NCBI GenBank assembly: GCA_025201805.1 | Contig: MU619336.1 | Coordinates: forward strand, 1 to 64,000 | Origin: Parasitella parasitica NRRL 2501 | Lineage: Eukaryota; Fungi; Mucoromycota | DNA length: 64,000 nt | Reading direction: 5' to 3' | Part shown: positions 26,278 through 32,015 of the stretch, piece after piece | Layout: each line of letters starts with the position of its first letter | Position numbering within the stretch: position 1 is the stretch's first letter | Notes under the pieces: model-generated | Told to the model about the DNA's origin: nothing | What the model saw: only the letters and a program-made list of their open reading frames with translations | The model's database searches: none | Made by a program: the position numbers and the translations under genes

Positions 26278-27736
26278 TTATTCTTTATTATAATACAAAC
26301 TAAAGGCATCTAATGAGGTTGTAATGACAGCAACCAAGATCTCCATGCCAATCAGCCAAATCACAATCCACTCTAAATGCTCTCCATGCGAACTGTTCAA
26401 GTGATCTTTGAGCATCTCTAATAAATCGCTGATAACTTCAACTCTTTGATTCAACAATTCCACACGCTGTGAAATTTCCAAATAGCCACGAATTGCACTG
26501 TATAATGGCTCCAATGTAGGCTCTGACCAAAAGATTTCTGGTGTATCTAAGATGTTGGAAACCAAGTTGACATTGATACGCATGATAAATAATTGTCCAA
26601 TTTTCTTTGTGATTGCAGTTCTACAAACAATTTGTGAATACATGTGATATCTGCTCGTGCCAGATCCGTCTATACCTGGACATTTGAATGTTTCCGCTTT
26701 CAGCCATGACTTGAGGAATATATTTGGTTTCATTAATGGTGTCGTCAATTAATCTCTCGAAAAGTGTCATTTTGACGCTTTGCGCTATGGCATGAGCAAT
26801 TGTCAACTTGATCAGGTAATTTGATGGGTGTCTCAGTGTGATAATGTCGTTGTAAATGCTATGATACAGGCAGTAAAGTTAGGGTAAGGATGGCTGTTTG
26901 CAGACTGTAGACTTTACCGAGGTTGATAGGCTTCATTATAGTAATAATGGAATTCTTCAGTTTCAACATCATCAGCATCAAGCTTTTCTTCCTCAAAAGG
27001 AACCAGTAACTTTAGTATTCTCTGCTCTTCCTTGAGCGTCATGCCCCAAAATACAATAACACCATAGTCAAATAAGAACATTTCAGGGAGCCTTTGATTT
27101 GTGTTGGCAGCATGCGCAGAAGAATGAGGCGGTGCAATTGGATACGTAAAGGCATATGGCGTATACAAACATTCGTCGAACCTCTTTGGCGCTGTTCCGT
27201 TCGTCTTCTTTTTCGACTGAAGGTATTTCACCAATTCATCCATACGATAGGCACTAGTGATTATTATGCGATTGTTACACAACATTATTTTTTTTTTCAC
27301 CAGATAAACAAACTTACGATGCGGTGCAGTAAGCTGTCATTCTCGACAATTCACTTCTATCCATTTTGTTCAACATTTCAGCTTCTTGTCTTGCCATGCC
27401 ATGAGGTATTTTAGCAATTTGAGTATACACGTCAGCTTCATTTTGCTCATGTTCCTGGTCCCATTGGTCATTGTCTTCAGGAAATAGCTTGAGCTTTTGA
27501 GATATCTTTGTTGTGCGCATAGGAAGCTTGGGCTTGCTGGATCTTGCTTGTGATTTCTGCTGCTGCTGCTCGACAAAAGTATTGTAATGAGAGCTTCTTT
27601 GAGGGAAAGAACGAGAGGTGTTTGGTTTCGGCGATGCATTTGATAAAGCGCCAGGGATGTCTCTTGCAATAAGAGGTGTATTTACCTGATCATCGTCTTC
27701 TCTTCTTGCGCTGAAGGCTCTTTGTGGTTGCGACAT
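26278..27736 (-). CDS. RMD1: Rmd1 / DUF155 family protein, multi-exon
   Basis: 'RMTAYCTASAYRM', 'FLFDYGVIVFWG', 'AHAIAQSVKMTLFE', 'NILDTPEIFWSEPTLEPLY..YLEISQRVELLNQR', 'LEWIVIWLI'. Confidence 0.9.
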
Positions 27737-28001
27737 GCTGTATGATTGTTTTTTTATCGGGAAAAAAAAACCGTTTCTTGCTCCCCCCAAGTTGGCAAGA
27801 TGATGTTATAGGATGAGAAACAAGTCATGTTGCTATAACCTTTTATGAATCTTGGTTGGACAGCCGCGCAGCTGGCAGTGCCTATTGTTGACTCATTGCA
27901 TGATTTGAAGGTATTTATCACTTTTTATTCCTCTAAACTATATTTTTTACACACACACCCTCCCCAAGTCGAACAGATTTTTTTTTTAATAATCGCAAAA
28001 A

Positions 28002-29013
28002 ATGAATTCATCTATGCTGAGACATTCTCCTCACTCGCCATATTCTACTGATAGCAAGTTAAGCACAAGCAGGAAGAGCCTTGGTCGGTATACAAGAAGC
28101 GAGCTATATGAACTTCGAGAAAGAAACCTGCAAATGCTGAGTAACCAGTAAGCTTGCTTTGTAGTCAAAAAAAAAAAAAAAAGAAATAAAAATCAAGACC
28201 TGTCTAATACAAAATTTAAAATTTAGATTTGTAATTGATACATTGCCGGATAAAGGTGCCAGGCTAAAAGAGACAGTTCAACATATTGACAAGCTGCTAT
28301 CAAGTGTGTTTGATGAAATAACTCCAGACAACACAAATGACATGGAATGTCCACTTACTGAAAAATTGCAAAATATGTCAGTACTTACTCCTCATCAAGG
28401 AGCAAGAAAGAGGTCAGTTGATTTGGCTAATCAGCAGGCATTCAACCACTATATGTCAAGCGGTTTATTGTGTAGAAAACCAAAGAGAAAATCGAGCACC
28501 CATACTCCTAGCAACGTCTACTCGTCTATATTCGTCCCTCAGCATGCTCACGGTACTAGTCCACCACAAAATTCTCAAACATCTCATACACCACAACATG
28601 TAAGTATCATTAAAGTTTTTCATGTGTCACACTAGTTTAATAACAACAACAGAAGACAAAGGTTAAAATGCTCACATTAAACGAATCTCTATCACTACAA
28701 ACAGAGCAGCAATCGTCAGTAAAAGAAGTAAGGAAAGATCATGACGAATCGAATGCCTGTATTAACTATTTCATTATTTCTTTAGTGTGAGAAATCACTT
28801 GATTTTGCACATCCTAGCAAGAGTCTTTTAAAATCGCTCAAGTAATGTATTTTCTTTGGCAAATAATGTTCCTATCTAATCAAGGATTTAAAACATAGCT
28901 TGTCTGTAGATTTAATCCAACAAGAAATCAACATTGATGATGTGGAATTTCCAGCTCACTTTGAAGAAGATGAGGATGACGATGTCCCTGTCGAGCCCAT
29001 GATGATTGATTAA
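28002..29013 (+). CDS. Gdown1/POLR2M (GRINL1A)-like RNA polymerase II-associated protein, 5 exons
   Basis: Spliced product: N-terminal 'SLGRYTRSELYELRERNLQMLSNQFVIDTLPDKGARLKETVQHIDKLL', later 'KVKMLTLNESLSLQTEQQSSVKE', acidic tail 'FEEDEDDD'. All introns are GT-AG and keep the frame. Confidence 0.7.
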
Positions 29014-30227
29014 AAATAAAGAATAGGAAATAAATATTATGCGTTATTTCATCACCACCGTGGCAAGTGATGAAAACAAGCACACACTTACGCACACACC
29101 CACGCACACAGAGCACGCACAGATAGGTTCGCTGTGGAAGGACACCGCTTTGTGTAATAGGCTGATGCTTGATAAAAACATTCTTTTTTCTTGCTAGTGA
29201 TTGATTCAAACTTCAGTTGTTGATGAAGCACATTAGGAATACTACCGTTAGTAGTCGTTCATGTAATATTTAATGTGATTAGTTTCTTTATTGGTAATAA
29301 AAAGCAATTTTTATTGTCGACTTTTATTGCATCATTCGAATCACACAACAAACACTATATGTTTGTGTGTATTTCTGAAAACGCACAAAAAAGATGTATG
29401 TTATTCTGTACAAAGACACTGTATCGTCATCCTTATTCAGAAATCAAACTCTGGTACTTTTTCAAGATAACGCCCATGTCTCTTGTACTTTCTAGCTAGT
29501 TGCAAAAGCAACTTGAAAGGTTGATTTCATTTTTATTCAAAGGACTCTAATAGTACCAACTAAAAATCACTATTTGACATAAAAATGGATGTATATCGAG
29601 TTGATGATATCATAAAAGGGAATAATATGAAAGTTGTATGAATCCAGTTTTAACAGTAGTAAGGAATTGTGTTTTAATGTTTCGGAACATACGAGTTTTA
29701 ACAGTAATCACGAACACATACTTGTATGTTGACGATATTATGGTTTTCTGTAAAGTTCTACAGATAAAATACTGCTGTACAGTAAGAATGGTGAATTCTG
29801 TCACTTTGAGAAAATTGAATGCATCGATTGTGAACTATCTTCCACACTGCTCTCGTTATTATCATCATCATACTCTGTAGCTGGTTCTTCTACAATAAAC
29901 ACATCTATAGTATTTTTTTGCCCTATGCTATTTTTTTTTTTTTTTTTGCTTTTGTGGACAAAATACCCTTTTTTTAGATTCTCAAAACCATCGAAGAAAA
30001 AAAAGGAACTTCAAAGTAACAAGGCAAAATGTTTACGAATATAATTTGATAAAAATCATGCATTACAATAACAACATTAACAGCATTAATTGGAAAGAAT
30101 ATGGAAGTAAGGTTTTGAAATATGGAGAAAATTAATCTTGATTCTCTATTGCTAACGTAATTGTTGGGACTTTGTAGCATATTTCTAGCATAACAGGATA
30201 TGATACACTATTTCCGGAAATTATTGG

Positions 30228-31135
30228 TGCACCAGCAAAAACATTTAGGTGCACTATCAAAAACGTTTTGGCGCACGACCAAAATAAATTTGGTGCAAAA
30301 ATAAGATGTGTTTGGCACAATTTCTTTATTGCTTCCTTTTGGGTTTCCTTTTCCTATTATAATTTATTTTACAGACATTCAGAATGGATATGCAATTTTT
30401 TTATGAAGATGGACAAGGACATGCTGTTGATGAAAACGGAGTTGAGCCCATGGATCTTGTTGTTGACGAGGAGTTATTCGCTTATCGAAACAATAAGTTT
30501 TCGTACTCAATTCCTAGCGAATAAACCTCCTGAGAGACCTCATAATCCTGTAATGCGTGCCGTTGCGGATGAGAGGAGCTGTGAGGATGTTTATATGGAG
30601 CAATGCTATACAGTTTATCCTGATGAAGATAAAACTCGATTTTTTCATTTATTTTTTAGCAAATGCTTGAATGCTTCTACCGTTGCAAGACAATTGGGTA
30701 TTCATGTCCGAGCAGCACAGAGATGGGTTAAACGTTATTACGAGGACCCTGAAAGCATCTTTGCGAAGAAAAAGTCAGGTCGGCGTCGTATTCTCGGTGA
30801 GGAGCATAAGCAATTTGGTTTAAATTATAGTGATGAGAATCCTTCTTCTGCTGTTGTAACTGAGGTGGCAGAAAGTTTAACGCAAAACTTTGCAGATCTT
30901 AAATGTTTCTCGTTGCACCATTTATAACTTCATGACAACTGAGTGCAATCTATCGATTAAGCAGGCACAATTCCAGCCTGTAGAAAGAAATAGCGAAGAA
31001 AAGATCCAACAAAGGTACGATTGGGTACAAAAGTGGCAGCAAACTGACTTGGATTTCACAACAAATTGTGTCTTTCTTGATGAATCAGCAAAGTTTTGCG
31101 TTAAACTTTCTGCCACTTCAGTTACAACAGCAGAA
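30228..31135 (+). mobile_element. Truncated, frameshifted Tc1/mariner (IS630-like) transposase remnant
   Basis: HTH region 'ASTVARQLGIHVRAAQRWVKRY..KKKSGRRRIL', 'VSRCTIYNFM..CNLSIK', and the first catalytic Asp motif 'NCVFLDES'; the rest of the DDE domain is missing. Left boundary approximate. Confidence 0.8.
30846..31135. repeat. 52-bp inverted repeat (30846-30897 and 31084-31135, 2 mismatches)
   Basis: ttctgctgttgtaactgaggtggcagaaagtttaacgcaaaactttgcagat versus the reverse complement of atcagcaaagttttgcgttaaactttctgccacttcagttacaacagcagaa. Confidence 0.92.
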
Positions 31136-32015
31136 CAAACTCTGGTAACTTATGTGGCTAATATTTGTGATTATAAGAGCTTTTTCTTTATGAAAACAAA
31201 AAGACAAGCAAAGCAATGATTATCAACCTTCATGTTTACTAATTCCTTCAATCTGTCTACTCATGCCAATATATATATTGCAGAGGGTTCAGGTTGCTTA
31301 AATCGTGGCAGAAACTGCATATTTTACTAGATGCTGTTTCCGACCTTGATCTTTTAATTGGTGACAATTGGGGTATATAAAATAACTGATGAAGCTGGTG
31401 TGTTGACAATGCAGTTCATATCGAAAACTTAAAATGGGATAAAAAAGGTATTCAAAGAGTATTTCTCCATACCTGATCAATTATTATGCAAATACTGAAT
31501 ATCCATGTTAATCGTTATTCATATACGCGGGTGCATAAAAACCATGCCGTTATCAACTTTGATTGAAAATATTGTTACTTGCAAAATGAGATTGATCCTT
31601 ACATTTCATATAATGGCTAGCGCCTAACAGAGCAGATGAAAAGACAGAAGAAAAGCCTTGGTTCTAGCATGTAATAGTGTTTTTTTATAGGGATTTGCAA
31701 AGTTTTTGTATCGATATGAAAAACTTGCCTTGATGAACGACATTATACTATATGCCATTTCGAATTCGGCAACTGTGCTCAAACAAACTTAGGAAGTATG
31801 CCACAATGTGCTATATAATTGAAAAAAAAAAGTAATCTTTCAATAAGTTATATTTGCATTCTCAGATTAATCAATAGAGGGATGAATACAGTGGTTTATG
31901 TTTTGTTTAATTTTGATTTTAAACCTCTTTTAATTAAGAGATGGACTTCAATGAAAAGTTTGGTCGTTTCAACACTAAGATCCTTGATTTCACGAATGTA
32001 TAGTTCTTTTCAAAC

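Follow-up and report, generated by a model that had tools for sequence, protein, structure and literature searches.

A spliced and expressed gene of the Mucorales fungus Parasitella parasitica encodes a probable homologue of the animal RNA polymerase II factor Gdown1 (POLR2M)

The window that we analysed, a 64-kb stretch from Parasitella parasitica (Mucorales), has the sequence of AT-rich eukaryotic DNA. On its forward strand, at 28002-29013, it carries a Gdown1-like gene with five exons and four GT-AG introns, whose coding sequence of 765 nt is translated to 254 amino acids. The initial annotation had joined five GT-AG exons into a small protein of about 260 amino acids, and this proposal stands, as all of the joints are present in a 966-nt RNA contig. 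The parts of the gene are:

27932 to 29143, forward strand: transcribed region, matched by the spliced 966-nt RNA contig in five pieces with 0 mismatches and 0 gaps
28002 to 28147, forward strand: coding part of exon 1, residues 1-48 and 2 nt of codon 49
28148 to 28226, forward strand: intron 1, 79 nt, GT..AG, phase 2 (joint 28147>28227)
28227 to 28599, forward strand: exon 2, residues 49-173, with the LPDKG loop, helix 3, a Mucorales-specific middle block, and a Ser/Thr/Pro-rich linker
28600 to 28652, forward strand: intron 2, 53 nt, GT..AG, phase 0 (joint 28599>28653)
28653 to 28727, forward strand: exon 3, residues 174-198, in which the PBR-like block begins (M179 and L180 correspond to human L303 and L304)
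28728 to 28785, forward strand: intron 3, 58 nt, GT..AG (joint 28727>28786)
28786 to 28841, forward strand: exon 4, residues 199-216 and 2 nt, continuing the PBR-like helix region
28842 to 28898, forward strand: intron 4, 57 nt, GT..AG, phase 2 (joint 28841>28899)
28899 to 29013, forward strand: coding part of exon 5, residues 217-254 and the stop codon TAA (29011-29013), with the end of the PBR-like region and an acidic tail

The 966-nt contig comes from one public run (depth 190, no mismatches), the RNA nature of which is only guessed. It has exactly four joints, each of them GT..AG and each at a predicted border, and so every junction that had been predicted from the DNA letters, from 28147>28227 to 28841>28899, is seen in the transcript data. 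As the contig lacks the four canonical introns, it is a processed transcript, and therefore the five-exon model is confirmed and the gene is expressed. The untranslated regions are about 70 nt (5') and about 130 nt (3') long, and the ATG at 28002 is the first ATG of the transcript. The annotated orthologue from Mucor circinelloides (P0029, 252 amino acids) has the same exon layout.

The neighbouring gene upstream (26278-27738, reverse strand), which has several exons and belongs to the RMND1/Sif2-Sif3/Mrx10 (DUF155) family, is divergent, and its start lies about 260 bp from the start codon of the Gdown1-like gene. Downstream, open frames at 30268-31219 (forward strand) weakly match homeodomain-like HTH families (HTH_23 and HTH_29, both below the cut-off). 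These frames resemble the remnant of a Tc1/mariner-type transposase.

The database entry at the locus is KAI8638903.1 (hypothetical protein BD408DRAFT_8607, Parasitella parasitica, 220 amino acids), whose product has been assigned no name or family. This model shares exons 1, 3, 4, and 5 with the transcript, except that its exon 3 is 3 nt shorter, at a NAGNAG acceptor (28653 vs. 28656). The larger difference is within exon 2:

28377 to 28475, forward strand: coding stretch of 99 nt that is spliced out as an intron in KAI8638903.1 (the RNA contig is unbroken over 28227-28599)

The part of the protein's middle that is conserved best, which belongs to the Mucorales-specific block, is encoded by this stretch. 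Because the transcript retains the stretch and because it encodes this conserved block, we consider KAI8638903.1 to be wrong at 28377-28475, and our finding thus also corrects the public gene model.

Gdown1 (also known as POLR2M or GRINL1A) makes Pol II dependent on Mediator in vitro, and it is now also seen in the biogenesis of Pol II in the cytoplasm. Structural papers as recent as December 2025 (bioRxiv 10.64898/2025.12.10.692585) and August 2026 (PMC13443923) describe it as specific to metazoans. Cryo-EM of human GDOWN1 revealed three regions that bind Pol II, termed RBR, EBR, and PBR (PMC13443923). The RBR (residues 19-73) consists of three helices with the motif LPDKG and sits on RPB10 and RPB3, with R30, R33, and L44 as the key residues; the EBR (residues 224-255, helix 4) sits on the external domains of RPB2 and on RPB12; and the PBR (residues 290-344) sits on the RPB2 protrusion, with L303 and L304 as the key residues (PMC13443923). 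Inhibition of transcription requires R30 and L44 in the N-terminal part and L303 and L304 in the C-terminal part (PMC13443923).

Counterparts of two of these three regions can be placed on the protein from the window:

28080 to 28299, forward strand: RBR-like N-terminal module, residues ~27-73, split by intron 1, homologous to human residues 19-73
28243 to 28257, forward strand: LPDKG motif, residues 55-59, in exon 2
28348 to 28440, forward strand: Mucorales-specific middle block, residues 90-120, ending in a basic R-K-R-S patch
28662 to 28923, forward strand: PBR-like C-terminal region, residues ~177-225, in exons 3-5, homologous to human residues 290-344
28963 to 28983, forward strand: acidic tail, residues 239-245 (E-E-D-E-D-D-D), in exon 5

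We compared individual residues across 28 Mucorales and 12 animal sequences. The L, D, and G of LPDKG are invariant (40 of 40). Every aligned sequence has R or K at the position of human R30 (in the window protein it is R41, which exon 1 carries within helix 1 of the RBR-like module), and all 40 have L at the position of human L44 (L55 in the window protein). In the C-terminal block, a hydrophobic pair precedes x-L-x-E-S-L-x-L-Q, after which come two helices, the second of them short; in the window protein the block reads ML-T-L-N-E-S-L-S-L-Q (residues 179-189, exon 3). Here all 28 Mucorales have M at the place of human L303 (M179), and the residue at the place of human L304 varies among L, M, and I (L180). 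The positions of human E23, L24, L35, D46, G48, E308, S309, L312, and Q313 are nearly invariant in both kingdoms. In contrast to human R33, the window protein has Q44; Q is also found in most of the window gene's clade (clade A, below), while clade B has K, T, or R. So, at the places of R33 and L303, the window protein differs from the animal proteins by having Q and M. The conservation of LPDKG and ESLxLQ in other Mucorales, on which the initial annotation depended, is seen in the L, D, and G of the former and the E, S, and L of the latter, which are kept in 28 of 28 sequences. Acidic tails are present in all of the full-length fungal and animal members that we aligned, and the tail reported after the second block is the one at residues 239-245. 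As judged by this alignment, the conserved regions are those that carry the human residues for Pol II binding and for inhibition of transcription.

An AF2 model of the orthologue P0029, made with the family alignment, has three helices in the N-terminal module (residues 27-42, 44-49, and 55-71, pLDDT 88-95), an arrangement that matches the three helices reported for the human RBR, and two helices in the PBR-like region (residues 177-197 and 203-221). Overall, the model is largely disordered (mean pLDDT 63). A Foldseek search of the PDB with this model (entries to April 2026, possibly without those of GDOWN1) gave nothing at E ≤0.001, and its best rows were ribosomal helices; this empty result is expected because the protein is mostly disordered and helical. 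The structure search of the ESM Atlas gave TM values of at most 0.26, which are meaningless.

The middle of the protein is where fungi and animals part. The initial annotation had described a Ser/Pro-rich linker between the two blocks, and exon 2 does encode a linker rich in Ser, Thr, and Pro, but the middle also holds the strongly conserved Mucorales-specific block, which is predicted to be helical (AF2, P0029 residues 99-121). No counterpart of the animal EBR was detected: hhalign of the fungal against the animal middle parts gave a probability of 0.1%. One HMMER alignment places the fungal middle block over the human EBR region, without support of its own, and a short, diverged EBR helix in the fungal protein is conceivable. 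More broadly, the fungal and animal proteins resemble each other in the three-helix module with LPDKG, in the C-terminal hydrophobic pair with the ESLxLQ block and its helices, in the acidic tail, in the order of these elements, and in their disorder. They differ in length (animal proteins have 300-370 amino acids, the window protein 254) and in their central part, the EBR included, which is not alignable and in whose place the fungal protein has the Mucorales-specific block. The human NES and cytoplasmic anchoring motifs (PMC9728996) also lie in regions that are not alignable between fungi and animals.

Evidence for homology comes from within the window as well as from the wider family. We built a profile from 12 animal sequences (fish, molluscs, and insects), with zero fungal sequences included, and with it scored each of the 2,622 open frames in the 64-kb window that have 15 or more amino acids. 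The three best frames were exon 3 (E 1.4e-5, profile positions 230-259), exon 2 (E 0.0055, positions 51-77), and exon 1 (E 0.041, positions 21-51), and these matches are collinear and on one strand. The Pfam family GCOM2 (PF15328) matches exon 2 at LPDKG with 16.4 bits (cut-off 27; model positions 15-37), and in a six-frame scan of the 32.8-Mb genome with GCOM2, this locus was the sole match. Exon 2 also weakly matches DUF7228 (18.4 bits, cut-off 27), but we dropped this match, as it is absent from ten of ten family members.

In database searches, the exons of the window were used singly, and full-length orthologues from the databases, chiefly P0029, stood in for the whole protein. Searches of the PDB with phmmer, using exon 1 alone and exon 2 alone, gave zero matches up to E 10; single short exons are too weak in such a search, and profiles are therefore needed. 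Exon 1 matches one profile (A1) at E 2.1e-10. With exon 2 as the query, exhaustive phmmer gave 28 relatives, and profile searches found about 50 named fungal relatives, all from Mucorales (Mucor, Rhizopus, Pilaira, Helicostylum, Thamnidium, Cokeromyces, Blakeslea, Choanephora, Backusella, Sporodiniella, Phascolomyces, Fennellomyces, Zychaea, Circinella, Lichtheimia, Dichotomocladium, Syncephalastrum, Cunninghamella, and Apophysomyces). The searches with Mucorales profiles extended to animal proteins named POLR2M or GRINL1A (E 2.4e-8 among 5.8 billion proteins), and a fish POLR2M was reached at E 6e-6.

GCOM2 is the top Pfam family in 8 of the 10 family members tested. The orthologue P0014 passes the curated cut-off (28.8 bits vs. 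27), while KAI8638903.1, the public model for this species, falls below it (20.9 bits, E 4.7e-4). Precomputed matches to PF15328 are already in the databases for seven Mucorales proteins. When a profile of ten Mucorales proteins was searched against 177,635 distinct PDB sequences, the sole match was human GRINL1A (28jc_M, 9t5h; E 2.6e-9). The match consists of two collinear stretches: the first aligns profile positions 27-69 with human residues 15-57, and the second includes the L-L-S-I-E-E-S-L block. The strings that the initial annotation had given for human Gdown1 agree with the human chain in the HMMER output.

Each of the two blocks is significant by itself. For the N-terminal module, aligning 19 Mucorales with 12 animal sequences in hhalign gave a probability of 98.7% (E 2e-16, 57 columns). 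For the C-terminal halves, with the N-terminal module cut from both alignments, it gave 94.5% (E 8e-8, 51 columns). So the resemblance to Gdown1 that had been noticed by eye in the N-terminal block with LPDKG is borne out, as is that of the second block, whose exon 3 tops the ranking by the animal-only profile, and the two blocks follow each other as in Gdown1, both in the window and in the match to 28jc_M. A comparison of profiles with POLR2M, suggested at the outset, thus finds each block independently (and the PDB match points the same way), although only about 110 of the 254 residues are alignable with the animal proteins. Overall, the evidence supports the conclusion, which is drawn from sequence, that the product of the gene at 28002-29013 is a homologue of animal Gdown1/POLR2M (GRINL1A; GCOM2).

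P. parasitica has a second gene of this kind, which belongs to a different clade (clade B):

1080 to 2026 of L003 in contig C173, forward strand: second Gdown1-like gene, three exons, identical to KAI8636548.1

The public model KAI8636548.1 starts too late and lacks exon 1. This paralogue has the motif LPDGG, a long acidic tail, and a C-terminal region that is more animal-like. Intron 1 has the same position and phase in the two genes, and the second intron of the paralogue is at almost the same place as intron 2 of the window gene. Other members of clade B are found in Mucor, Lichtheimia, Syncephalastrum, and Apophysomyces. They have the same two blocks as the window gene and partly share its middle basic block, but their C-terminal helix region is nearer to that of animals and their acidic tail is longer than in clade A. 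Members of the Mucor group within clade B have LPDGG as their motif.

In a maximum-likelihood tree of 40 sequences, which is unrooted and has few alignable columns, animals and Mucorales are split by one branch with support of 100/99, and the Mucorales are nested in no sampled animal group. Clade A is a single group (99/98) that is nested in a grade formed by clade B and is faster-evolving. Because both clades include early-branching genera (for example, Lichtheimia, Syncephalastrum, Cunninghamella, and Apophysomyces), the duplication is an old one in this order and probably predates the radiation of its sampled members.

Outside of the Mucorales, the only organisms named in three word-indexed protein searches and one exhaustive phmmer search were Metazoa. 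No Dikarya, chytrids, Mortierellomycota, Glomeromycotina, or unicellular holozoans appeared in those word-indexed and single-sequence searches. As two of the tools need shared words of five residues and the exhaustive search started from a single short sequence, the searches are weak for distant lineages, and absence from other lineages is therefore not shown. The ESM Atlas contains a cluster of 58 Basidiomycota proteins (each an "Expressed protein (Fragment)" of about 248 amino acids, without a Pfam family), which is the nearest unannotated neighbour of two Mucorales queries (0.89 and 0.86, with 194 and 181 shared features). We regard it as a lead to relatives in the Dikarya.

Our search of the literature found no paper that ties Gdown1, POLR2M, or GRINL1A to Mucor, Rhizopus, Mucoromycota, or fungi in this sense. 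The fungal branch of the Gdown1 family is undescribed, yet it is faintly visible in databases through the Pfam matches on Mucorales proteins.

We think it likely that the window gene encodes an expressed Gdown1 homologue that has kept two of the Pol II-binding regions, that would wrap around Pol II and occupy surfaces used by TFIIF, and that has a paralogue. More specifically, the fungal protein would wrap the face of Pol II that runs from RPB10/RPB3 to the RPB2 protrusion, by several weak contacts, in a multivalent manner as in human. It would thereby occupy surfaces that TFIIF uses and compete with TFIIF. The outcome could be a repressed or Mediator-dependent form of Pol II that is like Pol II(G), an intermediate of cytoplasmic assembly or import, or both. 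In the Mucorales, the helix with the R-K-R-S patch would replace the EBR; our guess is that it serves as a lineage-specific third contact, in localisation, or as a phosphorylation site. Binding to Pol II and exclusion of TFIIF are our inference. A complex prediction that paired an Rpb2 fragment (residues 12-700 of the main exon, so that the first ~90 residues of the protein are missing) with residues 158-225 of P0029 (PBR-like) scored 0.00 and has no bearing either way. The Rpb2 gene itself (contig C58) has two small 5' exons followed by one exon of more than 1,030 codons, and the coding sequence of the Rpb10 gene (contig C67, L007:1498-1850, forward strand) is spread over three very short exons (about 31, 32, and 11 codons).

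The most basic objection to homology would be that short motifs in an unrelated disordered protein have come to resemble Gdown1 by chance or convergence. The mean pLDDT of 63 for the P0029 model indicates a mostly disordered protein, the similarity is restricted to two blocks, and the PDB searches with single exons were empty. However, the blocks are each significant independently and have kept their order, the match of the Mucorales profile in the PDB is unique, as is the match of GCOM2 in the genome, and one orthologue clears the Pfam cut-off. Two independent, collinear, and significant blocks therefore rule out a chance match of motifs, and we give this explanation hardly any credence. If the protein is a true homologue, its gene could still have passed from an animal lineage into the ancestor of the Mucorales by an ancient horizontal transfer, which we consider improbable. 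It would fit the naming of Mucorales and Metazoa only in every search, but these searches were word-indexed or used a single sequence and are weak for distant lineages, and the Basidiomycota cluster in the ESM Atlas is a candidate for a further fungal branch. Also, the 100/99 branch separates the two groups and no sampled animal group contains the Mucorales, the fungal genes have spliceosomal introns whose position and phase are common to both paralogues, and both paralogue clades reach early-branching genera of the Mucorales. A very old transfer is nevertheless compatible with the tree taken alone, because the tree is unrooted and has few alignable columns.

The remaining alternative concerns function rather than descent, and although we hold it to be unlikely, it deserves more weight than the other two. 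The protein could be a true homologue that in fungi serves solely to assemble Pol II in the cytoplasm or to import it into the nucleus, or whose role is diverged in some other way, without Pol II(G)-type repression or imposed dependence on Mediator. Recent work puts human GDOWN1 mainly in the cytoplasm, on assembly intermediates (PMC13443923; PMC9728996), which speaks for such a role, and so do the undetectable EBR, the altered equivalent of R33 in the window gene's clade, and the faster evolution of that clade relative to the clade of its paralogue. Against it, the conserved regions hold the residues that inhibition requires in human (R30, L44, L303, and L304; PMC13443923).

The initial annotation had also proposed that Pol II(G)-type regulation may predate the split between animals and fungi. 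This part of the claim fits the tree, with its 100/99 branch and no nesting, but it falls short of proof, as the searches turned up Mucorales and Metazoa alone. A fuller version of this idea is possible, if somewhat short of probable: Gdown1 was present in the ancestor of fungi and animals; the two paralogues in Mucorales still form a complex like Pol II(G) on the face from RPB10/RPB3 to the RPB2 protrusion; one of them has specialised (for example, one in cytoplasmic assembly or import, with the other in nuclear repression); and more diverged relatives, to which the Basidiomycota cluster is the lead, are hidden in other fungi. The fungal branch either pushes the origin of the family back or exposes an old transfer. 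It suggests that the ancient parts of the family are the RBR and the PBR and not the EBR, and it offers a test case for Pol II(G)-type control outside of animals. If the idea is true, then repression of Pol II that is relieved by Mediator would be an ancestral opisthokont feature that was lost in yeasts, not an invention of animals. The animal Gdown1 gene is essential for embryos, which makes deletion hard in animals. Transformation, RNAi, and CRISPR tools exist for Mucor lusitanicus and M. circinelloides, so Mucor hosts are genetically tractable and both paralogues could be deleted.

Two metagenome contigs also carry related genes. One (Ga0247628_1001748, L015:265-1266, forward strand) has an intronless open frame of 333 amino acids with LPDKG and a match to GCOM2 that is above the cut-off (34.7 bits). 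Its middle region looks animal-like, and a WD-repeat-like open frame lies on the opposite strand. The other (Ga0302182_10059760, L016:146-1368, forward strand) has a fungal-looking member with introns, in which the middle basic block and the C-terminal motif of clade B occur together, and this member may come from a fungus outside of the genera listed above.
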